From Hamiltosporidium tvaerminnensis FI-OER-3-3 (taxonomy: Eukaryota > Fungi > Microsporidia), in NCBI GenBank assembly GCA_022605425.2, contig CM061248.1:248001-312000 (forward strand): a stretch of 64,000 nucleotides of DNA, given 5' to 3'. Positions within the stretch are counted from its first letter, which is position 1. Each line of letters begins with the position of its first letter. This document shows positions 3,594 through 58,782 of the stretch, piece after piece. Made by a program: the position numbers and the translations under genes. The notes beneath the pieces are model-generated. The model searched no databases and was not told where the DNA came from. It saw only the letters and a program-made list of their open reading frames with translations.

Positions 3594-4010
3594 TTATTTA
3601 TTGGTGCAACCGACCACGCCAGTTTGAATCATTGGCTTTTTTACATTGAATGTATTGTCAAATACACTATTGTCATCAGTGGTCAGATTATACTTTTCGA
3701 GAAATTTATCGTAACCGCCAATAAATTCACCACACAGAAATATAGCAGGTACATACTTATATCCATAGACTATTGTCATCAAATCGTAAAGAAGAGGATT
3801 TGCTCCTAATTCAATATCTACGTACGGTACTCCCATTTTGTTAAGTGTATTTTTAAGAGCCAAGCAATATTTACATGTGGGACTCGTGAGAATGGTAATT
3901 TTATTATTTTTTGCTATTTTTTCGAATTCTGGGACAGTCAGATTGACATATTTCGAATGTGCAGCTGTAATTATTTCCGTCACTGCAAATATAAGAAAAT
4001 AAAAAATCAT
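3594..4010 (-). CDS. Glutaredoxin, dithiol (CKYC), N-terminal signal peptide
   Basis: SPTCKYC, YVPAIFLCGEFIGGYD; signal-like MIFYFLIFAVTEIITA; clear paralog of 2349..2768. Confidence 0.88.
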   Translation of the reverse strand: MIFYFLIFAVTEIITAAHSKYVNLTVPEFEKIAKNNKITILTSPTCKYCLALKNTLNKMGVPYVDIELGANPLLYDLMTIVYGYKYVPAIFLCGEFIGGYDKFLEKYNLTTDDNSVFDNTFNVKKPMIQTGVVGCTNK

Positions 4011-7300: not shown

Positions 7301-8039
7301 TTTCTTAACAACAAACGCCTGTTTACTTCTATTTGAACCACTCTCATGAAAAAATTCGTTAAATTTTAGAGAATTACAACAAGAGATTGACGGTTACTCA
7401 TTACCTCTTTATGGAATGCTTTTTGGAACGAAACAGATATGGCCATATATAGATCAATCTGCCTGCGGTTATTCCTTTAAAACATATAGTTTTACAATGG
7501 AAAAAAGATATTTTGACACGTCGTAAGTTTTTTACATGAAAGTTTTTAAATAATTAATTTAGAGGGCTTTCCGGTTGAGAAGTCAAATAATCATACTAAT
7601 AATTCATCAAGCGAAGTCAGCGTGGTCTGGTGAGTATATGATAACAAAATAACAGGTATATCAAATGTGATTGTGTTCTTATTTTTTTCCAACGTTGTTG
7701 ACCGAAAACTCACGGTTTCATTCTGGATAAATCATATAAAGATGCAACTTTCTGAAAAAGAAATAATGAAAACGACTCCACAACGGCCACACATCGATTC
7801 TGTTGTCGGCTTGTATCCTACTTTCCTAAATTATAAGTTTTTTACGCAGATACTCTAAGAAGGGTTCTGTTTTTTAGAGCCTCAATGTAATTTGTTTACG
7901 CGGGAAAAATTTAAATTGCACTCTTTCATGAATTTGCGGGGATTTTTGTTTACAAAGGAAAGTTATCCTGTTTATGGGGTTTCGTAGAGATATCTTTTCT
8001 TTGTTTCAAACAAAAATTTTACTGTAAATATTTTCTCTT

Positions 8040-8450
8040 CACACCAATCTAGATTTTCTTGGTATTCTTACTCGTAATAGCATACTTGCGCCGCTTAAAT
8101 AATTTCAGCATTAAATTTGGTGATTGTTACATGAGATTCGGCATATTCATCTCTGGTTCAATCTATTTGTTTAAGATTCTACTATCAACCAATTCACTTG
8201 GAAATTTTCTAGTTCGGACCACTACATCTAAAATTCCTTCTTCGTGAGTTTCTTGACTTTACACAAGAACTTCTCTCTCTGCTTAATATTGAGCGTGTGT
8301 CAGTTAAGGAACATGGTTCTGCGAGACAAATGGCGTTGCTGAGTCGCTTTTCGTTCGCTAATTGCCTTGTGTGGTTTTCTGCTCATTCTATGTTAATTTT
8401 TTTAACACATCAATATCAACAGTAAAGTCAAATTTTTACTTAAGGTACCT
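8040..8450 (-). mobile_element. Decayed fragment of the N-terminal region of the RLE non-LTR element family
   Basis: agttcggaccactac and gtcagttaaggaacatggttctgcgagacaaatggcg align with 34715-34845 of the intact copy. Confidence 0.75.
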
Positions 8451-9009
8451 AATAATAATAAACAACCGTGTCAAAACAGGCTTCTAGATCTTTTCGCAGA
8501 TCAGGAAGAGCCCTTCAATACCATTTCCGCCATACAGCTGTTACATAATTTAGTGTCAAATGTAATGATTAGTTGTTGTTTTTTTCGACAATGCAACGGC
8601 GTAAGAGTTTCTTTAACATTATCCGAGCGTCGGGCGAGGAATTTGAGCAGGAAGACGAGTATATAGTGTCAATCAAGAAAACTAAAGGTAGTTAAGAAAT
8701 ATTTCTCGATACTAAAGGATATTTTATAGATGGCCGGTTTTGATGGAAGTTTCTTGTTGTTACCAAATACTGACACAACTTTATCTTCTTTACAGTAGTT
8801 TCTGGCTTGTTTACAACCTGTAATTGTTTATTTTTATATTTTTCGGCCAACTATTTTTTTTCTACACAATTTATTCTATAAATTCTGGGCTAAAAATTCT
8901 CTATGACGTTTAGAAATTTCCTTCTACCTCTTTAATTCCAATATTTTTCTCTTCTAAATTTATTTTATTTAATATCTATTGTCGGTTCCTACATCGTAAA
9001 TATGTGATT

Positions 9010-9350
9010 AAAAAAAATTGTATGTAGTCATTTACCACCATCTTCCTTTTTAGTCGCTCCTTGTAAAACTAAGGTTAGTTCCTCTGGTATTTCGGTTTTT
9101 TAATTACACCAAATGACGCCTCCTCTAAGCTCTTTTTCTCATTTGGTCCTCGACTCAAGTCCTCTTTTCGAAAAACGAAATTTTTTGGACTATCTTATTA
9201 AGTACTTTCTTCTGAATGTATGCTTCTATATTCATGGATATTTGAAGTTTTTAAGGTATGACTTATGATATTTTATCACAATACCGCCCTAGGTAATCAC
9301 ATAAGGGATTGTCTCAACGTTACACGTATTAATAACACCTAAATCATGCA
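9010..9350 (-). mobile_element. Decayed 3' (RLE/C-terminal) fragment of the same non-LTR family
   Basis: gtatgcttctatatt...gacttatgatattttatcacaataccg...atcacataaggga aligns with 31970-32070. Confidence 0.75.
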
Positions 9351-11445
9351 TTCCTCGTATTATTTTTTTTATAGCTGAAAATATTGGAAAAAAGTAGGTG
9401 AGTATGAAAGAATAGAATATAAAATACATTCAAGACTTGTTTTCTCGTCTGAATGTTCTACTTTTTATTTAACCACATAATTATCAAAATTTCTGCTCTG
9501 TTCATGGAATCTTTTTTTAAAAATTTTCGGAGGATAGGAGAATGTCTAGGCTTACGTAAAACACTTTAATATATGATATCTGGAATATTTTAGTTCCTAA
9601 TTTTGCTTAAAATACCATTAATTACCTCATAGTGAGGTATAGGTAGTACAAAAATTAATATTGAAGAAGCATTTTTCATAAATTGACATAAAATCTAAGA
9701 AGTTCTTAACCCGCAAAACTTTTATAGGAGTCAATGTAATCCACGAGCCAAAAGGGTGGCGATCCTTAAACTAATTAATTAAAAACAATATAATGATCAA
9801 TTTTTGCTGATTTAATGCCATATTTTATATACTGCAAGGTTTTATTGGTTTTTAGGTCTGTTGAATTTAAATAATTTTTGAAATGTAATGGATTAATGCA
9901 TTGTCAAGGAGTAACTATTTAAAAATTCACGATAGTTTAAGAATCTTGAAAGTCAAGGCATAGTTGAATAGTAAACTAATTTTAGGAACGGCTTTTTACA
10001 GAGTCTTTGTTTGATAATGGACTAAAAATAGTTAGATCATGTAAAGAGTTTTTCATTGAAAAAATAAAAATAATAATTTAATGAAAGAAGTTTATTTAAT
10101 CTTTTATAAAATGCACGTAGTTTCGAGTTTTGTATAAATAACATCTCTAAACATCATCTAGTCTTTTAAATAGCAACATCCTAATCTATTTAGATCCAGA
10201 AGATATTTAGAATCTATCTGATCGCCAAGATTGTTGCTTAATATGATTATAGGAGGGGAACTAAATCCTGCTCTTCTCTCATAAGTCAAGCTGTATTCTT
10301 AGATAGTCTACACTTCCTAATAAAAAAAACTTCTATCTAAGATATATTGCGAGGGCTTAAATAAGGTTTATCTGGACGTGGCAATTTCATTGTATCCGAT
10401 AATGCCAGCTACTTGGGTTTCATCTCAATGTCGTTAAATCTTCAATACGATAGACTAAGGTATGTGTTAGTGGTTTGTATGCTAATTAGCTATATATATG
10501 AACCATGAAATATGATATAGTTCGATAAGCAAATCCACCTAACTTTGTTAAAATTCACTTCCATATTCGAATTCTATCGAAGAATCGAAACTGTTGAGTG
10601 TATTCATTTCACGAAAATTTGAAAAAAATAATTTCGGCTAATAATTTAACTGTTTTTATGAAACAGATTTTTTCGCTGGGTTAATCTTATTCACTATCTA
10701 AGCCGCTAAAATATACCAAAAAAATCAAAATTCTTTACCGAACGAGTAAATTTTTTGATTATGGGTTGTACGATTTTGATTTTAATTATGATTCTAAACC
10801 GGGAAGTTTAAAAGAATAAAAAAAGGAAGAAGAAAATACACCGAAAAATTCGTGTTTTTTCATTGAGAAAATACGCCAAAACAAGTAATACATTTTAATG
10901 ACAATTAAAGCTTTAGTACAAAAAGCTTTAGATTATAAAATAAGTCAAAATTAATCAAATTCATAAACACTGATTTATTTCGACATGTGATATATAGAAT
11001 GAATCATAACAGTTAAATATGTCCAAAATCAATATTTTTTAAAAGACCAAATGAAACCCGAGATGTTTTAAGACTAAAATTCACATATTATTTATATCAA
11101 CTCAATCAATAATTTATATTTGTCGATTATATAAATTTAAAATCTAAATTAATAGAAATTTAAGTATAAAACTATATTTTTTTAATTAAATTATTTCTAC
11201 AAAACATATAAGGTGAAATAAAATTGTCTTTCGAATATTTGAATCCGCAAAAAAAATTAGCATGAAGCTGTCATATTTTGAGACTTTTTTTTACATGTCC
11301 ATATTTTCTTTATTAAAATTTACTTCTTTTGTAAATTTTTTCAGAATAAGATTTTGCAAAAAATAATCAAAATCAAATGTCTTTTTTTTATATCGTCGTG
11401 TCAACTAAATTGCAGTATTTATATTAAATAAATAGATTTGTATCC

Positions 11446-14289: not shown

Positions 14290-14790
14290 TATAAATTCAA
14301 GAAACACGCAAATTAGGATGTAGAACTCAGAATGAACGCAGGATAAGAGCTATTTATAGTTTGATCCCATATATTTTCTTAGACAATAGTAAAAATCAAA
14401 TAACTCATATTGAAATAGGAATTACTCAATAAGATTCACTGGAAAATGTTTGAAACTAAAAATAAGAAAATATGATTATTTACAAAGGATTTAGATAAAA
14501 TTATATGTAAGGTATTGAGATAATTCCTTATAGGATACTCTTGGATAGTATTGTACCAATGTACCAAATGTGTATCTTGATAACAGTAAATACACATGAA
14601 TATACATCCATATATACAGTCGATGGATCAAAAATGGAATCGAACAATTCTTGCTTGAGTAAGAGGACCTAGGTCGGGAAAAAATGCGGAAGAGGGTTAG
14701 GAGAGATGACTAATGAGTGTCATACAAAGAGCTTGAATAGACACGAAAGTAATACTCTTATAAAACTAATTAAAGCTAGTGAAGGTATTG
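14290..14790 (+). mobile_element. Decayed RLE-domain fragment of the non-LTR family, plus orientation
   Basis: aatcaaataactcatattgaaataggaattactcaataagattcactg resembles NKITLIEVGITSQDSL of the intact element; the downstream part resembles EIIPY..TWD.IV. Confidence 0.7.
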
Positions 14791-22700: not shown

Positions 22701-25433
22701 TAGTTCTTAGGTTATGCTTTGTTTCGAAAAATCGAGTTATAATAATCTACTTTCGGAAAGCATTTTGATCAAAGCAGAAGCTAGTATATTCTTACATGCT
22801 GTCCGAGTAAGTGGCGTTAGGCTTTTACATAAGTCATTATGAGGGAGATACATACTATGGCTTATATATTGCTTCGGATGTATTTGTAGAGACAATTTAT
22901 GTTGAATACTATAATGAGTAGTGCCAGAAAAGATGGTGAAATTTTAGAGAGATAATCGTTTTCTAAATTTTTAAAAAATAATTTCAGAGTATCTAAGTTT
23001 AAAAATTAATCCGAGAGATTTTGTATGGAATAAAAGGTTTTACAAAAAAGACTTGACATGATCTAAAACAACAGAATATGTTTTAACCATTTTTATAATA
23101 ATTCTGTTTTCACAGTTACAGCCATTTTAATCAACTAAATTATTAAGCTAAAAAACAGTGAAGGTAACATATTAAGTGTTCAGAGGCTTAATAAAACGCG
23201 TGTGATTTAACTTTGTTTTCATTTCTTTATTTTTTTTGCATTTTTTACTTTTTAAATGTTAATAGACATGATTTTACCTAAATTCTATGGCAAATATGTG
23301 AACCGCTTAGGTATTATGTGTTTTTTTGTGTAAAAACTCTATTAAATTTACACGAAACCCAATCTCTTTTTAATGTCTCGAGGTACAAAAGTGGACGAGT
23401 AGGAATATCCGAACGTATAAGATATAGCGATTTATGAAGGATTTGAAAAAATATTACATATAAAGAAAGTTTATAAAAATAACATGAATTCTACTTGAAA
23501 TGGAATTCTTATTACATTGTGTTGTTTACTTACACAAACAGATATAAATTTGATGTACAGAATTAATTAAGAATCATTAATTTGAGAAATTCAAAGAAAT
23601 AAGCATGCAGAAATAAAAATGTATATCAGTTTTTATTCTGATGCCTAAATTCGTAACAATAGTACTGATATAATGATTTTAGATATGTATAAATAACATA
23701 ACATTTATTCAGGTAGATATGTCTTTCCAAGACATATTTTAATTCGTTGATTTTGAAAAATCAGGAAGTATGACTTATAACCACAGTTTAGATGTTTTTT
23801 TGTTAAATCTGTTCGTAGAATATTTTATACGATAGCCAGAATTAGCATTACGACGGAACGCTTTATCATTTATATAAAACCACTGTAAATATTCCTGAAT
23901 TAAAAGCATATGTTCAGACAAAGATGCTAAAAATTTGATTGAAACAATCATTGATTGACAAATAGGACTTTATTCAGACCGAATGTGAAAATTAACGGCA
24001 TGGTTCTTTATCTAGTATTATAGAAATCCTCAGGATGCTCGATGAACTGATATCTTCTTTAAAATCATTCGTTAATCAAAAATGTTGTCAAACAAGTATA
24101 AATTAAGAGATTAGTATAACCTGTTTCGCTTAGCTACTTTAGAAGAACAAAAAATTACCAAAAATGAAGAGTCAGTTTTAAGAGATAAAATAAAGTCTAC
24201 AAGAGGCAGTAAATTTATAAAACAAGGCGTAGATAGTTTATAATAAAAAATTAGCGTATATAATCTCACAGTTAAATTTTTATTTTATTTAAATATTTTT
24301 GAAAAATCTGATCGTAGGTATATATTTATAATATTTGAATAGAAAAAAAATATTTTCTGACTAAACGTAGTATAATATTCTACCTTCCGTGTCAAAAACC
24401 TTGCAACGCTGTAAAAAATTAACATTATTTCGGGCCAAAGCTTGAATCTCTGCAAATTATAAATTTTCCATTACTTTTTTCTATCAGAATATAATTTATA
24501 TATTCTCGTTTTGGTAAATATTTTTACTAAAAAATTATGTGATTTTTTATTTTTATTCTATTCTGTTCCTTATGTTTTATACTCTCATTTCAGTTTTCTT
24601 TGGTATTATTTAATGTTGAATAACATAAATTAAGATAAACGGATCTCAATTAAAAGTATAAAAAATTTAAAGATTTCTTAAAGCGTTTAAGCTAAGCTAA
24701 TTAACATTACTTGGGCCTTATTATTTTTTTTTATAACCTTTTCTATTTCTAGATATAAAATATAAAATACAGCTGTACAATAAAACATTAAAAACCTCGA
24801 AGTAAGATGTAAAAATAGGAATGGATAGAAACCAAATTAATATCAAAAGTAATCTGTTTTATTGGATATTTATATTTTAAAACTCAATTTTTCTCTTTTT
24901 TGTTTTTTTTTTCATTTGTATATTTTATTTTTTTGATCCATTTTTGGTTTAAAATTTTAGTTTCTATTAAAATACTTTATTTCGCGCGCAGTGGTCATTT
25001 TTTGGGGAACGGTTATTTTTCTTCAAACACTATATTCTTTAGCAGTTGAGATGATTTGCTAGATTCTACTTAAGGCCGGGAATAAAACTCAGCGAAATAA
25101 ATGGAGTTCGTTTAAAAATATGACAATAATTATAGATTTGATTTTGAAGACACCCAAAACTGTATAATTAGCAAGTTTTTCTATTTTATATATGCCAACA
25201 CTCGTCTAAATTGGTCTTTTTAAGAATTGTGAATTGAAGATCATAGAGACTCATGTTAATGACAAATATAAAATAGAAAACTGCGAACATAAAATAAAAA
25301 CTTTTGATTTTGCTTGATTATTGTAAATCCAAATCTCATAACAAAAGCCTTGCTTGCTATTGTTTAAACCCATCATTATATTTAGTCTTAAAGATATTTC
25401 TTTTATCTAATATTCTTAGATGCATACTTAGCT

Positions 25434-25574: not shown

Positions 25575-26719
25575 GGAGAAAATTACACAAATATTCAAGT
25601 AAACAATATACAAGCATTTCGAAAAGAACAGTTTCGAATTTTGATGTTTTCCCTCTTATTGTTTGTAAACTGATGGATTGTAGTAAGTACTTAACTTTAA
25701 ACCACCAACCATTTAAAGAGAAATATCTAAAATCTCCTATATTCAATTGGCAGAAGCTTTTAATACCCGACTTTTTGTTAAACCAGTTGAAAAACAGCTA
25801 ACGAAAAAGATATTACATTTTAGGTATGACTAAGGATAGCGATGTACATCAAAAATATAAAATATTGAAAATAGTTTATTCTATCCTTTTCTAATTGATA
25901 TAAAACCAAAATAAAAAGTGTAATTCCTATATTGAAACATATATGATATACAAACAGCTAGTTTTGCAAACTGTTCATATAATCTAATAAATACATCATA
26001 GGATTCGCTTCAAATATATAAATAAACAGTAGAGATAACTCATTGGTCTATATGACACAATGTATAAACATATTATATCGTAAAGTACGCGAAATCAATA
26101 GAGCATAACAATAATTCTAATGAGATAATTACTAAATCCTTCAATATTTAGGATGTTCAATTAGAAATCGAATTCGTATAACACAAAGGCATTTAGTATG
26201 AATCAAAATAAACACTTTCAATACTTCTAAAATAATATTTGTGGTCATCTGAACTCTTAAATTGATTGTTATTTTTTTGATATTAAACCTCGTTTTGAAC
26301 TATTTTGCTGTTTCTGAATATCAAATGTAGTATAATTTTGCGCAAATTGGCTCCCGGAACATAACAAAATGCGTACGTTTTTCATAAATAGAATTAAAAT
26401 GTGTTGATGGCGACACACAATTGAATATAATTAGATTGTAAGTGCTTTTTTAAAAATTTCGTTCCAAACCTCAATTTTTTTTATCGAATCGAAGTATTTA
26501 TTTCTGAAAGTTTTACTTGAAATATGAGTATAATGTTTTTTTAATTTATAAAAATAATAATTGTAAAATCCTATAAGTTAGATGTTGATATAGAACTGGG
26601 TTAATGTCATAAAAACAGAAATAACTTATGCCACTGTTTTAAAAAGATGTGATATTTTTCGATAAAAATATTATTTAGTAAATGCTGCAAAATATTTTAT
26701 ACTCTGTTTATTTTATACT

Positions 26720-31599: not shown

Positions 31600-34500
31600 A
31601 AAATATTTATTTAATAAAATTCTGAGTTAACAAATTTTCTCTCGTTTAACTAATTTCTTCCATCACTTTAACCACTTTATTCTCTTTTTCTACATCCGAC
31701 TTATCATTAATGTCTATCGTCGGTTCCTCTGGTCTGGTTACGTCATCTAAAATAAGGGGTAAAATATTTTTTGAATTTACTTGTTTAACACTATCTTCCT
31801 CGTTCTTCACTTCTTTTAAGGGGGGTGTTGGCTGTTTATGCATCTCAGCTCCTATAATAACACTTAATGACGCTCTCTCCCAGCTCTCTTCGGCACTTGG
31901 TCCTGACTCAATTCCTCTTCGTCGATCGAAGGAAATCATTTCGACTGTTTTCTTAAGTACTATGGACTGAATGTATGCCTCTACATTTATGGGTATTTGT
32001 AATCTTTTAAGATAAGTCTTATGGTATTTTGTCACAATACCGTCCCATGTTATCACATAAGGAATTATCTCTACACTACATTTGTAAATAAGACCCAGCT
32101 CATTTGCTAATAGGTCATACTTCCTAAGTTTCTCTGTTTCAACTATTTGAAGTGAGTCTTGGGAGGTGATTCCTACTTCAATGAGGGTAATCTTATTTCG
32201 TCTCTTGTCTAAAACGAATATATCTGGCCTATTATTTCGAATTTTGACATCAGTTTTTATTCTGGTGTCCACTCTTATCTCTGCATACTCATTATCAAGA
32301 ATTTCTTGAACTGAGTGGCTTCTGATTCGTTTTGAAGACTTGAATTTATATTTATTTAACAAGAGCAAATGTATACATCGTACCACTTCATTGTGTCGTC
32401 TAGTATAGTCATGACCAAGCATTTTTTCACATCTCGTTGCTAAATGGTCTACTGTTTTTCTAGACGTGTTGCAGTGTTGACACACACCTTCTGCTCCCCA
32501 AAATACGTTTCTATCCTGGATATAGCAGAACACTGCTTCATCACGCGGTCTTACACTTCCTTTCTTTAACCATCTTGAGGAGTCATTTACGCTTACTAGC
32601 TCGTTGTTTCTAGCATTATATAACTTTGAATGTAGTTTTCGTTTTTCTATTTCGTTATATAAGTTAGCTAGTTGAGCTTCATCTAATTTATTTTTAGTGA
32701 CCTCCTCTGCCGTCCCGTATTTTACTTGTAAAAAGTCTTTTATTAGTGCAAGATGGGTTTTATTATCATTCTCCACCTTAAGGATTGCTGCTCTTCTGGT
32801 CGATGTTTCTTTAGATTTTTCCAGACAATCCAAGAGTTGCAAAAGCATATGTTCGCTTTTGAACTCAACACTATGAAGACCTCTCCCAAGTTCTGTTCTG
32901 GGAAGGTACAGACGCTCTTTACATCCTGGGCGAAGGTGTATCTTGTTCTTTATTAAAACTGCACGTACTGCGTCATCCAACTTTGAGAAGTCGCCAGGTT
33001 CAAGTCGAAGTACACCTATATGATAGTTTATTAGAGATATCGCATGTTGATTGATAGCTTGAAATAAATTTCTTGCATTCAATCTCGTGCGGCAAAGTCT
33101 CTCTACCCTCGCTATCAGTTTGGTTTGTACTTCCTCAAACGACTTACGTGTTGGAATTCCTCTGCTATCTTCTATTATTCCGAGGTATTTGTAAACACCT
33201 ATTCCTTCAAGAAGAGTAGCAGTATTCTCACAACACGAATCATTTGTGGCCGACTTCTCTCTGTTTATTTCTAATCCTATATTTTTCATAAACATTTTTA
33301 CTTCCTCCGTCATCTTTTCAAGCGTTGTTCCATCTTTGGCAAGGAGCTTAAGATCATCAATGAACAAGAGATGATTGGTAGAGTGGGATGCATCCTCCGT
33401 TTGTATTGTCACCTTTGCGTATTCTTCATTGAGTTTACGGCTCAATGGATCCATACACAGCACAAACAATAAGGGTGACAAACTATCTCCCTGTAGAATC
33501 CCCTTATCAATCTTCTTGTTCATAATTTTTTCAGACCCTACCGAAATATCAATTTTCCATTTTGATATTGTTACCTTAATAAATTTCAGGATCCAATCAG
33601 GTAAATTAAGGTTTTCGATGACTTGTGTCAAATAAGCATGATCTATTGAATCATACGCTTTTTTGACATCAATCCACGTTGCCTTAAGATTGTTTCCATA
33701 CTCTTTATTAATAGCAACATTTAGCAGGGCCTGCTCCTTCGCTCCTTGCGCACCTCTCACTGCACCCAATTGATTATCTGCTAGTAACCCTCGCCTCTCT
33801 ACCTCAAGCTGAACAACTTTTGTAACACACTTTGTCGTCAGCTTGTAAAGGTTTGACATACAAGTTATTGGCCTATAGTCGGAGCCTTTTTGTGGTACGC
33901 TTTTTGGAATGAGATACGTTAGCCCATGATAAAACCAATTAGCCTGTGGTGTTCCTTCAAAACATATGGCTTTCACAATATCATAAAGATACTTGTGAAG
34001 AGTCGTAAGTTTCTTGATATAAAAATTGTAGATCCCATCAATTCCGGCAGCTTTCCAGTTAGGAAGCCAATTGATAATAAATACAAATTCATCAAGTGAA
34101 GGAAACGTGGCCTGGTGAGTATCCGGCACGAAAGGTATCAGATACTCATCATACGTAACTATTTCATTATTTTTGTTCCACATTGTGGACCAAAAACTTA
34201 CAATTTCGTCACGATTAACCACATGCTCGGATTCCACACGCTCAGACAGGCCACGATAATATCTACCTCGGAACAACTCAAACATACGATTCTCTTTTCG
34301 GAATTGCTTCCTACTTTCGTACATCGTAACTTTTTTTTCGTAAACAGTTATCAGCTCATTCTTCTTAACTACAGCCTCCGATAGATCATTTGTTTTGTTT
34401 AGGTCTAAATTAAACTCTCGCATAATTTTTTTAAGACTTTTAGTTTGAGAAGAGGAGAGTTCTTCCCGTCTACGTGCTTTCTCGAGGATATCTTTTGAAA

Positions 34501-35410
34501 GTTTTAACACTGAAATTTTACTCTCAATGCTTTCTTTCCACGCTGATCTTGGCCTCTCTTTACGTGTTTCATCGTCATAACATACCTGTGCTGTCTGGAT
34601 AATTCGGGCAACGTCTGTTATCGTCATAGGTACATGAGAGTCAGCATATTCACCGACTATTCGATTAATAAGATCAAGAACTGTAGTGTCAACCAATTCA
34701 TTTGGAAGCTTTCGAGTTCGGACTACTACTTTTCCGATTTCCTCCTCAGATATTTTTTTGATATTACTCAAGTATTTTTCTCTCAGGCTTATAAATCGAG
34801 TAGCATCGGTCAAGGAACATGGCTCGGCGAGACAAGTGGCGATTCGACGTCGCTCTCCATTCTCTTCCTGCCTAATTTCCTCTTCCGTCTTATTGTGTGC
34901 CATTCTTTTTAGCACATCGATAGTTTCGGTACAGGAGAACTTCTCATTATAGTAGCTCTGTATCTCTTTCCATCCATTTCTAGGCATTCGGTCAAACCTT
35001 GTTTGTACTGCAAAAAGAACACATCGAATAAATTCTTGACGCTCGGCCTCTATAGATCTGAGTATGGATCGGAGTACAACGAGCCTTTCGGAAATAGGTA
35101 TGGTACAAAGGTTTGGCCAACTAGCAGCTATATCTGGCCTAGGGTTCACGGTGCTTGAATGCATAGGGTTAGATGGCGAGGGTATGGTATTAAGCAAGCA
35201 TACCTTTGTGTTTGTGTTTGCTTCGCTTGGTGGTATAGAAATGTTATTTATGATGGTGGATGGTGTGTATGAGCTTGGCTGTGGAATTCCCTGGTCGTTT
35301 TTACACTCTCTAATTACCTCATCCACTTCACTTGCCCTGTTTGCAGCCTTTATTATTTTTTCTTCTTGTTTTTCGCTGCCTACATATTTTCTTATACCCA
35401 TTTTAATCAA
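31600..35410 (-). mobile_element. Apparently intact single-ORF non-LTR retrotransposon (RT + restriction-like endonuclease; R4/Dong-like)
   Basis: Long uninterrupted ORF; the short 3' UTR is shared with the fragment at 37826-38135; 5' boundary not resolved. Confidence 0.92.
31646..35401 (-). CDS. Reverse transcriptase / RLE endonuclease polyprotein
   Basis: KAAGIDGI, YRPITC, WIDVKKAYDSIDH, GILQGDSLSPLLF, LFIDD, YKYLG; CQHC..DHLATRC zinc knuckle, YTRRHN, RPDIFVLD..LIEVGI..EKLRKY (PD-(D/E)xK). First ATG at 35401. Confidence 0.95.
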   Translation of the reverse strand: MGIRKYVGSEKQEEKIIKAANRASEVDEVIRECKNDQGIPQPSSYTPSTIINNISIPPSEANTNTKVCLLNTIPSPSNPMHSSTVNPRPDIAASWPNLCTIPISERLVVLRSILRSIEAERQEFIRCVLFAVQTRFDRMPRNGWKEIQSYYNEKFSCTETIDVLKRMAHNKTEEEIRQEENGERRRIATCLAEPCSLTDATRFISLREKYLSNIKKISEEEIGKVVVRTRKLPNELVDTTVLDLINRIVGEYADSHVPMTITDVARIIQTAQVCYDDETRKERPRSAWKESIESKISVLKLSKDILEKARRREELSSSQTKSLKKIMREFNLDLNKTNDLSEAVVKKNELITVYEKKVTMYESRKQFRKENRMFELFRGRYYRGLSERVESEHVVNRDEIVSFWSTMWNKNNEIVTYDEYLIPFVPDTHQATFPSLDEFVFIINWLPNWKAAGIDGIYNFYIKKLTTLHKYLYDIVKAICFEGTPQANWFYHGLTYLIPKSVPQKGSDYRPITCMSNLYKLTTKCVTKVVQLEVERRGLLADNQLGAVRGAQGAKEQALLNVAINKEYGNNLKATWIDVKKAYDSIDHAYLTQVIENLNLPDWILKFIKVTISKWKIDISVGSEKIMNKKIDKGILQGDSLSPLLFVLCMDPLSRKLNEEYAKVTIQTEDASHSTNHLLFIDDLKLLAKDGTTLEKMTEEVKMFMKNIGLEINREKSATNDSCCENTATLLEGIGVYKYLGIIEDSRGIPTRKSFEEVQTKLIARVERLCRTRLNARNLFQAINQHAISLINYHIGVLRLEPGDFSKLDDAVRAVLIKNKIHLRPGCKERLYLPRTELGRGLHSVEFKSEHMLLQLLDCLEKSKETSTRRAAILKVENDNKTHLALIKDFLQVKYGTAEEVTKNKLDEAQLANLYNEIEKRKLHSKLYNARNNELVSVNDSSRWLKKGSVRPRDEAVFCYIQDRNVFWGAEGVCQHCNTSRKTVDHLATRCEKMLGHDYTRRHNEVVRCIHLLLLNKYKFKSSKRIRSHSVQEILDNEYAEIRVDTRIKTDVKIRNNRPDIFVLDKRRNKITLIEVGITSQDSLQIVETEKLRKYDLLANELGLIYKCSVEIIPYVITWDGIVTKYHKTYLKRLQIPINVEAYIQSIVLKKTVEMISFDRRRGIESGPSAEESWERASLSVIIGAEMHKQPTPPLKEVKNEEDSVKQVNSKNILPLILDDVTRPEEPTIDINDKSDVEKENKVVKVMEEIS

Positions 35411-37554: not shown

Positions 37555-37825
37555 AGTATTTTTTTTTAATTTTTTATTTTGTGAATAAATTGTATTTCTT
37601 AAGAGTATCAGGTTGTCTTTTATTATTTATTAATCATTTTTTTATTTATTTTAATTTCTTAAGAGTTTCAGGTTGTATTTTATTATTTAGTATTTTATTC
37701 TTTATTTTTTAGTTATATTTAGGTTTTTTTAGTTATATTTAGATTTTTTTTCAAGTTTTATATTCTTTTTTCCAGTTTTTTATTCTTTTTTCAAGTTTTT
37801 TATTCTTTATTATTTATTATTTATT

Positions 37826-38135
37826 CAGGACTAAATGTCGAAGAGAGCTGGGAGAGAGCGTCAATGGGTGTTATTATGAGATCAGAGATGCATGAGGAAC
37901 CAATACCCCCTTTAAAAGAAGAGAAGAGAGAGGAAGATGGTGCAAAAAATTTTAAACCAAAATATAAAGCCCCCTTTATTTTACAAGGAGAATCCACGTT
38001 AGAGGAACCGACCAATAACATAAATGAAGAGTCGGATTAGGAAGAAGAGACAAAAGTGGTTAAAGAGGTAGAAGAAAACATATAAAAAATGGTAAAAATA
38101 TTTTAACCCAGAATTTTATTTAATAAAAATTTTAA
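37826..38135 (+). mobile_element. Short 5'-truncated copy (3' end) of the RLE non-LTR element
   Basis: Translates as EESWERASMGVIMRSEMHEEPIPPLKE vs EESWERASLSVIIGAEMHKQPTPPLKE; 3' UTR ttaacccagaattttatttaataaa matches the intact copy. Confidence 0.9.
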
Positions 38136-40413: not shown

Positions 40414-41292
40414 GCGGGGTATTTTTCTCACTTTTTTTTTAACAACCCATCACACTTATTTATGCAAATAAAAAATTTATTCCGAAAAAAAAGGGGGAAA
40501 TTGTATAAAAAAAACTAAAAACTTACTAACCAATGAAATTTACAACTGATTAGAAAAAAAAAATTATAAATTTTAATAAATTTGGATAAAAAAAATTTTT
40601 GTAAGAATTTTACATTCCTCATTATTTAAGAGTTTAGAATTTTTTAGAAACATTTCTAAATATTCAAATCTTTTATATATTTAATTCTAAAGTTTACTTC
40701 TTATTATAAACTATTATTAACAATGTAATATTTAGATTTATAATATTTAAATCTGATGTATTTAAAAGAAAAAATATTTTTATTTCTTTTTTAACATTCT
40801 ATTACAATAATATAGAAAGTAAAATACTACATCTTAGATGTGAATAAACCCAATAAAAAATAATTAAATATTAGTTCTATTACAATAATTAAGAAAGTAA
40901 AATACTACATCTTAAACGTGCATAAATCAATAAAAAATAATTAAATATTAGTTCTATTACAATAATAGAAATACAGAAAATTCTTATAAAATTTAAATTT
41001 ATAAATATTTTTATATTGATTGTTATGTGAAATACGATTTAAATGTTGAGATTATAAATATATTTTAAGTCTTTTTTTTTATTTTAATAAATTCAAATTA
41101 AAAAACGTATATTTTAAAACGAACAAAAAATTATTTTTAAAATATTATGATTAAGGAAATAATCTGTACTAGTACTTATTAATTATATAAGTTCCTTTTA
41201 ATATGTATATTTTAAAATATTATGATTAAGAAAATAATCTTTACAAATACTTATTAATTATATAAGTTCTTTTTAATACTTTATTTAAAAAT

Positions 41293-42013
41293 ATCACATC
41301 TTTTTAAAACAAAGGCAAGTGCTATATTTGTTTTTCATGACATTAACGCAGTTCTAGGTTTAACATAAATAACTGCTACCCTAAAACCCCATCAAGTAAC
41401 CCCTGCGATTCCTACGTCCCAAAGCCTTTCATCTACCAGGTGTGTAGAACCTAATTAATAGGCGAGGCAGTTGCCCGGAGTTCGTTAATGTCCTTTGCAT
41501 GGAGTGTGATCGAAGGCCGAAGCCCCCCCTGGGCTCCCCCAAGACTATGCAGCATTCCCACTTACTCTACACTTTCTGAACCCAATAAACTTCTAGCTAA
41601 GATATATTTCAGAGATTTACATGGGGTCCACCTAGACAGTGCAATGTCATACCAACAGGTATAACCTGCTACTTAGCTCTCCCGGCTTTTAATGGGTTTT
41701 ATTTTTATATCTCCCAGGCGCTAAGTCTTCTAACCCGAGTGAGCAAGGCTAGGTTTCCATGCTTTTACATGGCAATTACATACATGTTCAGCTGTGGTCT
41801 GCAATCTGGTTACATAAAAAACTACAAATAAATTCGTAGAAAAAGTTTCACCATTTCTTAGACCTCTCCTCCTCATAACAACTTCCATGGAACAACCGAA
41901 GATGTAGTGTGGTTGTATTCCCACCAAAAATCCAAACAATGATCTCACACCAGTTTCACACACTCATTGCCAAGCAGAAAGTTTTTTATGTGGTTATCCT
42001 CCCTCCACTATTA
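41293..42013 (-). ncRNA. Candidate large structured non-coding RNA, copy A (family unknown)
   Basis: Reverse complement of 45279-45989; GC-rich island; no conserved ORF; several differences from copy B preserve pairing through G-U on this strand. Confidence 0.6.
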
Positions 42014-42019
42014 AGTCTG

Positions 42020-42610
42020 TAAATTAAAATATTAAATACATTAAAAGTAATTTTTCTAGAAATTTATTTCTTTATATTTAACGTTTTTAAAATATTAAAT
42101 ACATTAAAAGTAATTTTTCTAGAAATTTATTTCTTTATATTTAACGTTTTTAAAATATTAAATAAATTAAAAAGACAATTTTCAAGAAATTTATTTCTTT
42201 ATATTTAACGTTTTTAAAATATTAAAATATATTTTTATTTGTTTATATTTTAAGTGAGAGATTTCAAATTTGTTTCTATTTTAAAGTAAATAGCTTTAAA
42301 ATTTATATTGAATATATTAGCTTTTAGAGGATTTGAAATTAAATTGTTTTTAATAGTATTTCTAAATTTATTAGATAAAAAGTATGAAAATATATTTCCA
42401 CAGTATAAGATAAAACTACAAGTTTATTTCTAAATTTATTAGATAAAAAGTATGAAAATATATTTCCACAGTATAATGTAAAATTACAAGCTATTTCTAG
42501 ATTTATAAGGTAAAAAGTATGAAAATATATTTCTATTTTATAATGTAAAATTACAAGCTATTTCTAGATTTATAAGGTAAAAAGTATCAAAATATATTTC
42601 CAGAGTATAT
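42020..42610. repeat. Two adjacent AT-rich tandem repeat arrays (~63-68 bp units)
   Basis: gaaatttatttctttatatttaacgtttttaaaatatta x3; aaaaagtatgaaaatatatttc x4. Confidence 0.85.
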
Positions 42611-42640: not shown

Positions 42641-43174
42641 TTAATTATCGACATATATAAATTTCACATTAAATAAGCCTACCGTTAAAATAATTACTAA
42701 GACACAGAACACCATGATCATAAACGGTGTGACAAAAATATTTAAAACTTCAAAAAAGCATTTCAAATAATTGATTTTTCTGATTCGGAAAATGCGATTT
42801 CTTAATCTAATATTTCTTAAAATTTCAGTTTCTGTACCAATAAAAAAACAATGATACATATTTTGTCTATTGGGGGCTTTTTTTAGTTCAAAATACCATA
42901 TGGTGTCTACTTTTAGGCGGGTTTTTGGTTCATAGAGAGAATAGACGAACATATGTTCCCTATACGTAATGCTTCCATATCTTAGGCGTGCTATATCTCT
43001 TGCAAAATAAGGAAATATTTGGTTTTGACATATCATCAACCCGATTACAAGTCTTCTAAACCGATTATTATACGTTTGGATTATATTTTTATAAGATTCT
43101 AAAGATATTGGATCTATATAATCTCCAGGTAGTCTGTAAAGTAGTTTATTTTCTTTTATAAAATATATCATCAT
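42641..43174 (-). CDS. Hypothetical protein with C-terminal transmembrane segment
   Basis: 177-aa ORF in a gene island; hydrophobic IFVTPFMIMVFCVLVIILTVGLF near the C-terminus; no family recognised. Confidence 0.6.
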   Translation of the reverse strand: MMIYFIKENKLLYRLPGDYIDPISLESYKNIIQTYNNRFRRLVIGLMICQNQIFPYFARDIARLRYGSITYREHMFVYSLYEPKTRLKVDTIWYFELKKAPNRQNMYHCFFIGTETEILRNIRLRNRIFRIRKINYLKCFFEVLNIFVTPFMIMVFCVLVIILTVGLFNVKFIYVDN

Positions 43175-44660: not shown

Positions 44661-45278
44661 TAATGAAATGTTAAATTATGAGAAAAAAAATACGAAAAAA
44701 ATGATTTAATTATAAAATACTTCAATAAAACACAGAAAAGATCAAAGAAATATTTTAAATTTCAAAGGATATTTAAAAGGAATAAATGGGTTACAAATAA
44801 TATACAAATAGCAAAAAAATTAAACCTGGTAAATTCATGAATATAACTTTGTAAACCAAATAAATAAATATTCAATGAATTAACTAAGTAAGTAAAAGTA
44901 TTTCAAACTATTAAATATTATTCGCTCGACTTAATTTAAGATAAACATTTATATATAAATAGAAAGAATCAACATATTTAACAATTTTTAATCTTACCGT
45001 TTTGTATATTTTTGATCCCACGGATAATACTATTATGGATGATTTTAAATCAAACGATGGTAAAAAATTTTATTGATACTCATATGCCATTTTAAACTTA
45101 CAGATGGATAAATTAGAAACTGTAAAGAAATAATCGAAATTTTTAAATAATTTCGTTACAGTATTTAATTAAATTGGCTTTATCATGGTAGATAAGGAAA
45201 CAGAGTAATGAATATAAACATCAAACGTAAATTATTGCTTGTTTTATTCATTAATTTAATGTATTATGATATAAATTA

Positions 45279-45989
45279 TAATGGTGGATGGAGGATAACC
45301 ACACAAAAAACTTTCTGCTTGGCAATGAGATGTGAAATTGAATTAAAGGTCATCGTTATATTTTAGTAGGAATAAACCTCACTACATCTTCGGTTATTTT
45401 ATAGGATTTGTATGAGGAGGAGAGGTCTAAGAAATGGAGAAACGTTTTCTACAAATTTATTTGTAGTTTTTTATGTAACCAGATTGCAGACCGCAGCTGA
45501 ACAGGTAGGTAATTGCCATGTAAAAGCATGTACCTAGCCTTGCTCACTCGGGTTAGAAGACTTAGCGCCTGGGAGATACAAAACGAAATACCATTTAACA
45601 CCAGGAAAGCTAAGTAGCAGGTTATACCTGTTGGTATGACATTGCACTGTCTAGGATAACCCTGGTTATGCCTCTGGATAATGTCTTAGCATGGAAGTTT
45701 ATTGGGTTCAGAAAGTGTAGAGTAAGTGGGAATGCTGCATAGTCTTGGGGGAGCCCAGGGGGGGCTTCGGCCTTCGATCACACTCCATGCAACGGACATT
45801 AACGAACTCGGCTAAATGTCTCGCCTATTAATTAGGTTTACACACCTGGTAGATGAAAGTCTTTAAGATGTAGGTATCGCAGGAGTACTGTATGAGTGTT
45901 GAGGTAGTAGTTATTCATGTTAAACCTAGAACTGCGTTAATGTCATGAAAACAAATATAGCACTTGCCTTTGTTTTAAAAAGATGTGAT
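45279..45989 (+). ncRNA. Candidate large structured non-coding RNA, copy B (family unknown)
   Basis: cUUCGg hairpin 45760-45775; helices 45301-45312/45465-45476, 45560-45566/45609-45615, 45795-45804/45935-45944; conserved blocks shared with copy A. Confidence 0.6.
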
Positions 45990-47091
45990 CTTCTTAAATG
46001 CATATAATGGATACGTGTTTTTTTTCTATTTTCTTTGAAATTCAATTAATCTTAATACTAAGTAGTAAAACAACTATTGATTGAATAGTCTAATAGAATT
46101 TTATAAACGGATTAAATTAAAGGATTGTGATAATATTAACCAGGAATTTAAAGAACTAATGAATGGAAACTTACTTCATTTTGCTAAAGAGAGCTGTTTT
46201 TTTCAGACAAAGATAAAGCTTATTATGAAAATTTACAGACAGTAAAGACGACGGAATAAGATTAACATGTGGGATTAACAAAACGGGAAATAAGATGCTG
46301 AAGCCCTGGGCGAATTAAAAGCAAGAAGATCGGAAGCGGAAAATATGAAACTAAACAATATTTTAAGTTTATTTTTAAAATTACTTACCAATGCATCAAA
46401 ATTGTGATATGAAATCCTAAAAAAATATACAAGTATACAGATCTAGTGAAGTTATAAATTTCTGATAGAGAAATCATGATATTGAAATCGTGTTTAGGAT
46501 GATATATTTGCTTTTTTTACAATGTAAAATTTAGTCTGGTTCTACAGGCTTAAAGGGTTGTATAAAAATAAAAAATCAAAACCAGTATTTTTGCTTATTC
46601 CTCATATTTTTAATTAACTTCTATTAATTGCATAATTTTTATTAATCACAAATTAAGCTTCTCAATGTGCGACCTTCATCTGTTTTATAAAAATTTTAAT
46701 ATTTTAATAATCAGAAAGAGTAGCTTCTGGTATTTATATCTAAATATTGATTTGAATAATAATTTTAAAGAATACTAAAAAAATCTTTTGTAAAATTATA
46801 AAAAAAGATCTATTTAAATTTAAAAAGAAGCATCTCTTATTAATAAATAAGCTGTATGGTATGTTTTAACAATTAATATTCTAATATATTTTCAAAAGAT
46901 AAATAATTTTTAAGTTATCGTTATCAAAATTTTTCAGCGACAAATTAAAATACATCTAAATAATATTTTCTTAAAAATTTGACGAAAATAGAAAAATTTA
47001 ACTCAATCTAAGATAAAGAATACAAAAATAGAAATATTATCGTTATCCTGTTTTATAAAAAGTATTTAAAAGGGAGTTTTTTTCTAAAAAA

Positions 47092-48333
47092 ATGAAAATT
47101 TCAAAGTTAAAGATATTTTATTTTCTGTGCATATTTTTCGCTATTTCAATTGTTTCTTATGAAATAATATTCATGAAACAATATATAAATGATCTTTCTA
47201 ATTCAACTGAAATATTCCAGGAATCGAAAATTCTAACACAATTATATGATTTAGTAAAAGATATCTTTAAAATCGAACAAAAAAATATAACAGAAAAATA
47301 CATAGCTCTTTTATGGTTACAAATATACGAAATATTAACATGTTTGGTGATTTCACTCATATTTATTTCAAAAAAAGCACGAAAAATTATATTTAAAAAG
47401 TTAAATGAAAACAATACAACTGAAATACCATTTCTAACTTTAAAAAAATCAGAAATATCGTATTTTACACTTTTAGTAATTCTCATTTTCACATCTAAAA
47501 TTATTAAATACTTACTCTTTAGTTGTAAAATAGGATTCGATGCTTTTGATTTTCGATCTCAAATCAATAACCTCATATGTGAAATTATTTTTAAATCTTA
47601 CGCCGGTTTGTTTTTTGCTACATTTTTTCTAAAATTTTTCAAAAGAAAATATATTTACATTACGATAATAGCTTTTGGTCTATTCCTATATTTTAGTATA
47701 TCTTTTAAAGAAATGGGAGATCCTACAATCGCAGGATACGAGAGAATAGACCCAACAACACTAGATATTCAAATACAAGAAGCAATAGCTAAATGCAAAT
47801 TAGGAAATGATATTTTTGTAAAGCAAACCGGTAGTTTTTTTACGAATGCTTTCTTTGCCATAAATTTCGTTACAAAACGTATAATATTAGACGGTGAAAT
47901 TTTTAAAGGAAAATATTTTACACAAGGTATATTATCTCACGAACTTGGACATGCCATGGATGGGAGAAACATTCTATTTGCAAAAATTACATTAGAAATA
48001 CTCAGCTTTGTTTTTATTTTGTTCTTTGTTGATTGTTTGGTTTCGAAATATTTTGTAGATGAAAATGTTTCAAGAGATTGTTCAAGTGCGGTTCTTTTTT
48101 TATTTTATTTAAGCTATTTCCACGTCTGTTTAAAACCCATGAATAATATTTTGTCACAAATATTCGAATTTAGAGCAGATTCTTTTGCTAAATCGCTCTC
48201 TCAGCATATTCCTCTAGCTAATTTTCTTTTTATTATCTCGTTTAACAAAGCACCCTTTATATCAAGCAAACTGTACAGTTCTTTGCTTTACACACATCCA
48301 AGTATTTATGACAGACTAAAAAAATTTGATTGA
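47092..48333 (+). CDS. M48 zinc metallopeptidase (Ste24/CAAX prenyl protease-like), multi-pass membrane; copy 1
   Basis: NAF, HELGH (HExxH), EFRAD, THPS..DRL motifs; several TM segments; GGG motif at 47072-47074. Confidence 0.92.
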   Translation: MKISKLKIFYFLCIFFAISIVSYEIIFMKQYINDLSNSTEIFQESKILTQLYDLVKDIFKIEQKNITEKYIALLWLQIYEILTCLVISLIFISKKARKIIFKKLNENNTTEIPFLTLKKSEISYFTLLVILIFTSKIIKYLLFSCKIGFDAFDFRSQINNLICEIIFKSYAGLFFATFFLKFFKRKYIYITIIAFGLFLYFSISFKEMGDPTIAGYERIDPTTLDIQIQEAIAKCKLGNDIFVKQTGSFFTNAFFAINFVTKRIILDGEIFKGKYFTQGILSHELGHAMDGRNILFAKITLEILSFVFILFFVDCLVSKYFVDENVSRDCSSAVLFLFYLSYFHVCLKPMNNILSQIFEFRADSFAKSLSQHIPLANFLFIISFNKAPFISSKLYSSLLYTHPSIYDRLKKFD

Positions 48334-49414
48334 AAATAAAAAAAATAAAGTTTACTATTTCTATTATAAAGTATTTGATTTTGATTATTTCAATAAAAAA
48401 TTTTGCTGATTTTTTACAACTAACTTATTTATAGATGCCGTTTGGGTGAAAAATCAGTATCTCAACCGAAAATACAAAGACCATATGTACTCACTTATTT
48501 CTAAACTTTGAAGATGTATTCTCTATATTACCTCAAAAATAAAACATATTATTTTGCAACCTTTGAATTCTTTAGAAATGATGAAATTTGAACCAGGGAA
48601 GCAGAAATTTTATAAAGTTAGAGATAATAACAAATCCATATTTTTATACGGAAATCCTGAAATTAAAGAGATATAAAATATAAAAAATTTTCTTCAAAAA
48701 AAAACATAAAACACACAATTTGCAAATTTTTTTATGAAATTTAAAATAAAAAAGAATTCATTCAAAGACATTAATGCAGAAGATACTGAGCAGCATTTGG
48801 ATTTCTTTCAGACGGATCGTGAAATACAACAATAAAATCCATGAAAAAGAAATTCCTTGTTAGAATAGAAATGAATTTAAAAAAAAAAATAAAGATTTTA
48901 ACATTATGTGGACAAAACAAAATCGATAAGTATTGCAAACTAAATGTAAAAAACAAGATACTCTGTCATTACTATACAATACAATGCAATAAATCAGAAA
49001 TTACATCTATTTATTCAATATACATATAAATTCAAGTCTTCAAAACGAATTTAAGATCTCGCTGACAATAATTCTTAAAAATTAATATATAAAAATAAGA
49101 ATAAACACTAAATATCAAAACAGATGTCGAGTGTACAAGAAAAACTCTGATACATTTATTTTTGATAGAACTATTAGTTAAACCATATCTATCTGGATTG
49201 GAAAAACGTCCCACAATATTCTTTAAATCGTTGAAACTAGGAAAATCTAAAAATGGAAGACTTTTAGTCAATCAAAAAGTTATTTTTATTTTATTTTATG
49301 TGGATTTCATTGTATATATTACAATTATATTACAGTTTATTGTAATTTATAACATATAATATATTTTAACAACCTTCAAATACCAGTAAGAATATTCGCA
49401 TTTTTTATGTCAGA

Positions 49415-54702: not shown

Positions 54703-55944
54703 ATGAAATATTCAAAGTTAAATATATTTTATTTTCTGTGCATATTGTTTGCTATTTCAGTTGTTTCTTATGAAATAATATTCATGAAAAAATATATAAA
54801 TGATCTTTCTAATTCAACTGAAATATTCCAGGAATCAGAAATTCTTAAAAAATTGTATGAAAGAAATGAAAAATCCTTCAAAACTAAACAAATATATACA
54901 ACAGAAAAATACATAGCTCTTTTATGGTTACAAATATACGAAATATTAACATGTTTGGGGATTTCACTCATATTTATTTCAAAAAAAGCACGAAAAATTA
55001 TATTTGACAAATTAAATCAAAACAATACAACTGAAATACCATTTCTAACTTTAAAAAAATCAGAAATATCGTATTTTACACTTTTCGGAATTCTCATTTT
55101 CACATTTAAAATTATTAAATACTTACTCTTTAGTTGTAAAATAGGATTCGATGCTTTTGATTTTCGATCTCAAATCAATAACCTCATACGTGTAATTATT
55201 TTTATATCTTACACCGGTTCTTTTTTAGCTTCATTGTTTCTCAAATTTTATAAAAGAAAATATTTTTACATTACGATAATAGCTTTTGGTCTATTCATAT
55301 ATTTTAGTATATCTTTTAAAGAAATGGGAGATCCTACAATCGCAGGATACGAGAGAATAGACCCAACAACACTAGACATTCAAATACAAGAAGCAATAAC
55401 CAAATGCGAATTAGGAAATGATATTTTTGTAAAGCGAACCGGTAGTTTTTTTACGAATGCTTTCTTTGCCATAAATTTCGTTACAAAACGTATAATATTA
55501 GACGGTGAAATTTTTAAAGGAAAATATTCTACACAAGGTATATTATCTCACGAACTTGGACATGCCATGGATGGGAGAAACATTCTATTTGCAAAAATTA
55601 CATTAGAAATACTCAGCTTTGTTTTTATTTTGTTCTTTGTTGATTGTTTGGTTTCGAAATATTTTGTAGATGAAAATGTTTCAAGAGATTGTTCAAGTGC
55701 GGTTCTTTTTTTATTTTATTTAAGCTATTTCCACGTCTGTTTAAAACCCATGAATAATATTTTGTCACAAATATTCGAATTTAGAGCAGATTCTTTTGCT
55801 AAATCACTCTCTCAGCATATTCCTCTGGCTAATTCTCTTTTTTTAATCTCGTTTACCAAAGAACCCTTTGTATCAAGCAAACTATACAGTGCTTTGCTTT
55901 ACACACATCCAAGTATTTATGACAGACTAAAAAAATTTGATTGA
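54703..55944 (+). CDS. M48 zinc metallopeptidase, copy 2
   Basis: 413 aa, same motifs as 47092..48333, catalytic core identical. Confidence 0.92.
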   Translation: MKYSKLNIFYFLCILFAISVVSYEIIFMKKYINDLSNSTEIFQESEILKKLYERNEKSFKTKQIYTTEKYIALLWLQIYEILTCLGISLIFISKKARKIIFDKLNQNNTTEIPFLTLKKSEISYFTLFGILIFTFKIIKYLLFSCKIGFDAFDFRSQINNLIRVIIFISYTGSFLASLFLKFYKRKYFYITIIAFGLFIYFSISFKEMGDPTIAGYERIDPTTLDIQIQEAITKCELGNDIFVKRTGSFFTNAFFAINFVTKRIILDGEIFKGKYSTQGILSHELGHAMDGRNILFAKITLEILSFVFILFFVDCLVSKYFVDENVSRDCSSAVLFLFYLSYFHVCLKPMNNILSQIFEFRADSFAKSLSQHIPLANSLFLISFTKEPFVSSKLYSALLYTHPSIYDRLKKFD

Positions 55945-58040: not shown

Positions 58041-58782
58041 TATAAAATATAAAAAATTTTCTTCAAAAAAAAACATAAAACACACAATTTGCAAATTTTT
58101 TTATGAAAAACAAAATAAAAAAGAATTCATTCGAAGACATTAATGCAGAAGATACTGAGCAGCATTTGGATTTCTTTCAGACGGATCGTGAAATACAACA
58201 ATAAAATCCATGAAAAAGAAATTCCTTGTTAGAATAGAAATGAATTTAAAAGAAAAAAATAAAGATTTTAACATTATGTGGACAAAAGAAAATCGATAAG
58301 TATTGCAAACTAAATGTAAAAAACAGGATACTCTGTCATTACTATACAATACAATGCAATAAATCAGAAATTACATCTATTTATTCAATATACATATAAA
58401 TTCAAGTCTTCAAAACGAATTTAAGATCTCGCTGACAATAATTCTTAAAAATTAATATATAAAAATAAGAATAAACACTAAATATCAAAACAGATGTCGA
58501 GTGTAAAATAAAAACACTGATACATTTATTTTTGATAGAACTATTAGTTAAACCATATCTATCTGGATTGGAAAAACGTCTCACAATATTCTTTAAATCG
58601 TTGAAACTAGGAAAATTAAAAAATGGAAGACTTTTAGTTAATCAAAAAGTTATTTTTTTTATTTTATGTTGATTTCATTGTATATATTGCAATTATATTA
58701 CAGTTTATTGTAATTTATAACATATAATATATTTTAACAACCTTCAAATACCAGTAAGAATATTCGCATTTTTTATGTCAGA

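Follow-up and report, generated by a model that had tools for sequence, protein, structure and literature searches.

Organization of the locus

The DNA analysed here, hereafter the window, is the whole stretch of 64,000 nucleotides taken from contig CM061248.1 of Hamiltosporidium tvaerminnensis FI-OER-3-3 (positions 248,001 to 312,000), and coordinates below refer to it unless they are given as element positions. The window has a mean GC content of about 27%. On its plus strand, positions 45284-46002 are occupied by what we consider, with high confidence, to be a SINE-like retroposon of about 728 nt; we refer to this element as copy A. It can be aligned over its whole length with 56 other copies, and is bracketed by the heptamer TATAATG, which is found at 45277-45283 and recurs directly after the element at 46003-46009, forming a target-site duplication (TSD). 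The preliminary description of this DNA had delimited the element as 45279-45989, an extent corrected here to the interval between the two heptamers.

A second copy, copy B, lies at 41279-42008 on the minus strand. It is a typical young member of the family and shares 96.3% identity with a canonical copy across element positions 1-729; no clean TSD was found for it. Copies A and B are homologous in opposite orientation, with 88% identity over 711/724 nt (88-90% by MAFFT and BLAST), which agrees with the relationship to the region 41293-42013 proposed in the preliminary description. Both copies are non-coding and GC-rich (42%, versus 26.6% for the genome), and their inverted placement, 3.3 kb apart, is coincidental. 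Two smaller pieces of the same family are present in the window: a severely 5'-truncated copy on the plus strand at 26591-26666, which retains only its final ~77 nt with the canonical 3' end (element 652-728, 86% identity), and a 46-nt internal fragment on the minus strand at 10304-10348 (element 401-446, 83% identity).

The window also contains a full-length non-LTR retrotransposon (LINE) of 3.8 kb on the minus strand at 31606-35404, the putative autonomous partner of the SINE-like family; its single ORF is listed as 31646-35410, with the ATG at 35401. On the plus strand, 37819-38127 is a 5'-truncated remnant from a related LINE subfamily (75% identity to LINE positions 3493-3799); it has the same tail motif, and shows very high summed depth in a DNA-like public run. 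Three tandem AT-rich units of ~62 nt occupy 42020-42200, directly upstream of the 5' end of copy B when the minus strand is read. Between copies A and B there is a 177-aa ORF on the minus strand (42641-43174), with a sub-threshold match to DUF5092 (E = 0.004).

Copy number and distribution in the genome

The assembly comprises 21,638,905 bases in 17 contigs. When it was searched in full with 45279-45989, a first look gave 1267 candidates; among the best 41 matches, which are distributed over nearly all contigs, 40 are full-length. Copies were then counted by matching two conserved 24-nt motifs, one in the core and one in the 5' head of the element, with one mismatch allowed and with the reversed patterns as controls. 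The core motif has 424 matches in the genome (210 forward, 214 reverse) and the head motif 463 (235 forward, 228 reverse), while the reversed control yielded none in either case; matches are found on every contig, and about evenly on the two strands. The description of the element as being present in two copies was thus wrong. At ~450 copies of 0.73 kb each, the family amounts to ~0.33 Mb, or ~1.5% of the assembly. The published H. tvaerminnensis genome (21.64 Mb, 17 contigs, 26.60% GC) was reported to contain 39.56% interspersed repeats, with 'other' or unclassified repeats making up 25.45% of the genome (PMC10542269).

We collected and aligned 56 distinct full-length copies, which range in length from 715 to 732 nt. 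Their median pairwise identity is 96.6%, a few relics falling at 70-87%, and the GC content of the copies is 41.7%. Most members of the family are full-length, as the similar counts for head (463) and core (424) indicate and as is usual for short elements. On contig C1, the head and core motifs are found together, ~475 nt apart, at 14 loci; another nine loci have the head without the core, and ten the core without the head. The core-only loci are consistent with 5' truncation, and the head-only loci suggest diverged subfamilies, or another family, that have kept the conserved head.

Among the indexed public sequencing runs, the four that contain this stretch behave like DNA, and no RNA run is one of them. 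In one such DNA-like run, unique sequence is covered at ~1000x, and the summed contig depth over copy B reaches 1-3 million, a value that is not a copy number although it agrees with a high-copy repeat. Three RNA runs which carry another species label than those four gave 0-3 reads over 5.4 kb that include two housekeeping genes, for eIF4E and a MYST acetyltransferase, and contain essentially no reads of this organism.

Termini, target-site duplications and truncation

We aligned 34 copies together with 80 nt of flanking sequence on either side. The copies share sharp common 5' and 3' ends, beyond which their flanks are unrelated. They start with GTGGAGGGAGGATAACC and finish with CTTTTAAATAAA, the final G being optional, and no terminal inverted repeats are present in the family. 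A TSD of at least 8 nt was found in 26 of the 34 copies; most are 10-17 nt long, and the median over all 34 copies is 12 nt. A clean TSD is absent in copy B and in seven other copies. A control in which the 5' and 3' flanks were taken from different copies returned TSDs at a rate of 2.2%, which argues against an origin of the TSDs in low-complexity flanking DNA. The TSDs mostly start with ATT, TAT or TTT and thus offer the tail no A-rich microhomology. In ~40% of copies (e.g. L002, L005, L009, L010 and L025-L027), 6-14 nt of AT-rich filler separate the tail from the 3' TSD, and just before the 5' end of the element there are often one or two additional bases.

Several copies with the canonical 3' end lack 5' portions of the element. 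In addition to the piece at 26591-26666 in the window, we found copies that span element positions 264-729, 450-727, 452-728, 631-724 and 658-728. The combination of variable TSDs with polar truncation points to target-primed reverse transcription, and excludes both a solo LTR of an LTR retrotransposon and a non-autonomous, MITE-like DNA transposon. The size of the element is typical of LTRs, and its dispersed distribution and lack of coding capacity would suit either of these; however, TSDs that vary between 10 and 17 bp match neither the fixed 4-6 bp of LTR elements nor the fixed length expected of a DNA transposon, the termini are neither TG...CA nor inverted repeats, truncation affects the 5' end only, and among the loci examined no pairs of copies in direct orientation surround a gag-pol region. 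We therefore give these two explanations practically no weight.

The preliminary description favoured a cellular non-coding RNA (ncRNA) gene in two copies, and listed an RNA-based mobile element among its other options. The first of these proposals is refuted by the hundreds of dispersed copies with TSDs, which that description had itself set down beforehand as a refuting outcome, and by their 5'-truncated relatives; the second is correct. We have little doubt that the element is a single insertion from a family of non-autonomous non-LTR retroposons, ~728 nt long, 42% GC, non-coding and SINE-like. In target-primed reverse transcription, RNA of a master element would be copied into DNA at the nicked chromosomal target itself, presumably by the protein of a LINE supplied in trans. 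This enzyme would most likely come from the 3.8-kb LINE with a single ORF in the window, which ends in the same TTAAATAAA. The expected product is an insertion with a target duplication of 10-17 bp, sometimes with a few filler bases at the 3' junction and occasionally with a truncated 5' end.

Coding capacity and polymerase III signals

The longest ATG-initiated ORF in each of 58 copies encodes between 35 and 79 aa (median 58), which bears out the earlier remark that no ORF is conserved. Box A- and box B-like motifs are absent from the family copies, and ARAGORN detected no tRNA. A comparison with Rfam, which had been proposed at the outset, gave no matches at the gathering score over the whole window and none at E ≤ 10 over 45150-46100; as microsporidian RNAs are divergent, this result is weak when taken alone. 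On the sense strand, runs of four to six T residues are found at element positions 79, 165, 188, 622, 698 and 718. The internal T6 run on which an argument against transcription by RNA polymerase III (Pol III) had been built is indeed present, and the argument is right, since there are six runs of at least four T residues. Given the lack of an Rfam match, of a tRNA-, 5S- or 7SL-derived head and of Pol III boxes, together with the six internal T runs, we describe the family as SINE-like rather than as a canonical SINE.

RNA structure and sequence constraint

Some properties of the element are of a kind that might be expected of a family of genes for a structured cellular ncRNA, such as a telomerase RNA, an RNase P/MRP-like RNA, an RNP scaffold or a ribozyme. 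Besides being GC-rich, the copies contain long invariant blocks, and the hairpins listed in the preliminary description are present in the sequence, including two with C(UUCG)G loops and a perfect 10-bp helix that closes the 3' domain. The pairing claimed for a 12-bp helix in the 5' domain, perfect in copy A and with one mismatch in copy B, is the reverse of what we found: copy A has 11 of 12 pairs (C/A at 45304/45473) and copy B all 12. When a typical copy was folded and compared with shuffled sequences, the z-score was -2.25 for the sense strand and -1.27 for the antisense strand, which is a modest signal, with only 20 shuffles for each strand.

The covariation term returned by RNAalifold for 58 copies is -0.18 kcal/mol, and at this level of divergence the family is too young to inform. 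Among ten diverged copies (mean identity 78.5%), we counted 21 compensatory pairs on the plus strand, against 9-17 in slid controls; on the minus strand of the same copies there were 17, against 3-10 in slid controls, a similar excess. The clearest compensatory changes affect a C(UUCG)G hairpin and the 10-bp helix that closes the 3' domain. Covariation is weak and not strand-specific.

It had further been proposed that changes between the two copies that preserve wobble pairs mark the sense strand. This does not hold across the family: at Watson-Crick pairs in helices predicted from a single sequence by minimum free energy (MFE), transitions that lead to G-U and to A-C pairs are about equally frequent, both among shared variants (22:20) and among private ones (72:73). 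The sense strand is nonetheless the plus strand of copy A, as had been claimed, but the evidence for it is the polarity of truncation and the 3' tail, not wobble pairs. We also discarded a test in which shared variants appeared to keep pairs more often than private variants (odds ratio 6.3), as the reverse strand gave an odds ratio of 6.7 and the test is circular: the alifold procedure favours columns that are compatible with common variants. When the 5' end of the element was inspected by eye for an HDV-like ribozyme, only a weak, wobble-rich candidate for P1 was seen (nt 1-7 with 29-35).

The GC content, UUCG hairpins, invariant blocks, folding score and few compensatory changes thus stand against ~450 dispersed copies with TSDs and truncations, the empty Rfam comparison, the covariation term of -0.18 kcal/mol, the equal numbers of wobble-preserving and wobble-breaking transitions, and an excess of compensatory pairs that is similar on both strands. 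On this balance we consider a cellular RNA gene family very improbable. For the SINE-like retroposon, the conserved blocks (including the UUCG hairpin and the helix of the 3' domain) most likely represent a constraint on the master RNA, through its transcription, its stability or its recognition by the reverse transcriptase (RT); they do not indicate a cellular function.

Lineages within the family

Copies A and B differ in their relationship to the rest of the family. Copy B is typical, with a mean identity of 95% to other members, whereas copy A is diverged and atypical, with 89% identity to a canonical copy and a mean of 87.5% to the family. None of the best 40 genome matches listed for copy A is closer to it than 89%. 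In searches seeded with diverged copies, copy A and the copy at L024:2447-3154 are singletons among the matches listed, their nearest relatives being 89% and 82% identical, respectively; both are members of old or minor lineages. Copy A is an insertion of an old or minor lineage, and copy B a recent insertion.

Copy A departs from the family majority at positions that cluster strongly (index of dispersion 3.5, versus 0.86 for shuffled positions; P < 0.0002), which supports the earlier observation that long perfect blocks alternate with diverged, indel-bearing patches. Patches that are hypervariable between lineages tend to vary among young copies as well (rho = 0.6), and the long blocks are invariant. 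Simple decay does not explain such clustering of differences between lineages; distinct master lineages, or conversion, are needed.

A candidate LINE partner

The ORF of the LINE at 31606-35404 encodes an RVT_1 domain (E = 1e-28), and its RT is similar to L1 ORF2 and R2 proteins. No APE domain was detected in the first 500 residues of the protein, even at E ≤ 10. By eye and by regular expression, the C-terminal part contains a CCHC motif (C-x2-C...H...C) followed by RPD...E...K; no profile matched this region, and a PDB sequence search for an R2-type nuclease returned chance matches only. On the basis of these motifs, the LINE appears to carry a restriction-like endonuclease (RLE).

Like the SINE-like family, the LINE family is young and abundant. 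Among 1161 candidates, at least 44 LINE 3' ends show 86-100% identity, and the 5' end is found at 26 places; this difference indicates strong 5' truncation. The 3' boundary of the window copy is set by more than 40 copies with 97-100% identity. About 20 full-length copies, which set its 5' boundary, start within a few bases of window position 35404, at the ATG, and this leaves the LINE practically without a 5' UTR. A TSD is present in each of the eight 5'-truncated LINE copies in which one could be tested, and in the seven that were read out its length is 10-19 nt, the range seen in the SINE-like family. Old relics of related LINE subfamilies, with 66-69% identity, are present in the window at 6899-8415, 8870-9347, 14369-14706 and 23585-23778, and point to a long history of this LINE lineage in the genome.

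Every LINE copy ends in TTTTATTAAATAAA. The last 9 nt of the LINE are identical to the tail of the SINE-like element before its optional G; at the background rate of the window, this terminal 8-mer occurs 4.8e-4 times per position. Similarity past these 9 nt is not significant when the last 30-100 nt of the two elements are aligned locally (P = 0.06-0.4). A BLAST comparison at word size 7, of the SINE-like 5' end with that of the LINE and of the SINE-like body with the LINE, likewise found nothing beyond the tail. With neither a LINE-like body nor a LINE-like 5' end, the SINE-like element is not a deletion derivative of the LINE.

Because the two families share the same terminal 9 nt and the same TSD length, and because both are young, this LINE is the likely driver of the SINE-like family; as the similarity of their tails stops at 9 nt, the partnership is circumstantial, and we regard it as plausible and rather probable. 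The alternative is that the retroposon was moved by the RT of another, or of a now-extinct, LINE family. Such a source would account for the lack of significant tail similarity beyond the 9 nt in common, and the diverged relics in the window show that other LINE subfamilies have been present. It is opposed by the identity of the 9-mer at the exact 3' end, by the equal ranges of TSD length and by the youth and abundance of both families, and no LINE with a better-matching tail was found among the loci examined; we therefore consider it unlikely.

The LINE (~37-39% GC) and the SINE-like copies (42%) are both far richer in GC than the genome (26.6%). Copies of the two families are also found nested or abutting (L049:788-1502, and the 5' flanks of L022 and L030). 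One LINE sits inside the tail of a SINE-like copy, with SINE sequence as its TSD, and some SINE-like copies begin a few bases past a LINE tail.

Comparison with known retroposons

The closest analogue of this pair is EhSINE1/2/3 with EhLINE1/2/3 of Entamoeba histolytica. EhSINEs are not known to have a tRNA-type head. Both systems comprise a long, non-coding retroposon that generates TSDs in the AT-rich genome of a parasite. They differ in that no sequence similarity is seen between them and in that one host is a microsporidian and the other an amoebozoan; moreover, the tail shared by LINE and SINE-like element is just 9 nt here, the LINE is 3.8 kb long, has a single ORF and hardly any 5' UTR, as against 4.8 kb for EhLINEs, and the Hamiltosporidium retroposon is markedly richer in GC than its genome. 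According to PMC3716655, the EhSINEs of Entamoeba histolytica are non-coding elements of 0.5-0.7 kb which insert with TSDs into an AT-rich parasite genome; a paper referenced there (Mandal et al. 2004) states in its title that LINEs with a restriction-enzyme-like endonuclease mobilise them.

Canonical Pol III SINEs resemble the family in being non-autonomous, mostly full-length and, as is probable here, dependent on a LINE, in having TSDs, and in having a tail that matches the end of a LINE, here over 9 nt. The family departs from them in its lack of similarity to tRNA, 5S or 7SL RNA and of A and B boxes, in its six internal runs of at least four T residues, which would stop Pol III, and in its length of 728 nt, which is greater than usual. 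The trypanosomatid RIME/ingi and NARTc/L1Tc and the R2 'SIDE' elements are non-autonomous partners of LINEs in protist or insect genomes that are not known to have Pol III heads. These, however, are deletion derivatives in which both LINE ends are preserved, whereas only the tail of the element described here resembles a LINE.

The LINE itself appears to share several traits with R2-, R4- and NeSL-type elements that carry an RLE: a single ORF, a central RT, no detected APE domain, a CCHC motif in the C-terminal part ahead of a PD...(D/E)...K-like motif, and 3' junctions with untemplated filler. In contrast to such elements, it is dispersed over unrelated AT-rich sites rather than site-specific, and its putative endonuclease region has no sequence match in the PDB.

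A more far-reaching proposal is that these two families form the first characterised LINE/SINE-type pair in Microsporidia, comprising a long, GC-rich retroposon without a Pol III head whose structured core (5' head, UUCG hairpin and 3' domain) is needed for two purposes: to define the 5' end independently of a promoter, for example by R2-type self-cleavage from read-through transcripts, and to recruit an RLE-type RT by means of little more than a 9-nt tail. We put this forward as speculation, and think it quite doubtful.

Novelty and significance

The SINE-like family seems to be undescribed. The literature that we searched yielded no description of a SINE in Hamiltosporidium, and term counts on two surveys of microsporidian transposable elements (PMC4202319 and PMC7313128) did not return the word SINE. 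The family is probably one of the repeats left unclassified in the genome paper (PMC10542269).

The family is ordinary selfish DNA, and its recognition removes a false lead, since the element does not represent a new class of cellular RNA. Some of the unclassified repeats that were reported to fill 25% of the genome (PMC10542269) would now have a class, the family amounting to ~1.5% of the assembly. The occurrence of a recently active LINE/SINE-like pair in a microsporidian with a large genome bears on how such genomes expand, and the insertions can be used as presence/absence markers in population work on this Daphnia parasite.

Other repeated features of the window

The window contains two ORFs of equal length (413 aa), at 47092-48333 and 54703-55944, both of which match Peptidase_M48. 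Two LINE-like fragments, at 49020-49128 and 58390-58498, score identically. Together, the pair of ORFs and the pair of equal-scoring fragments look like the result of a local segmental duplication.
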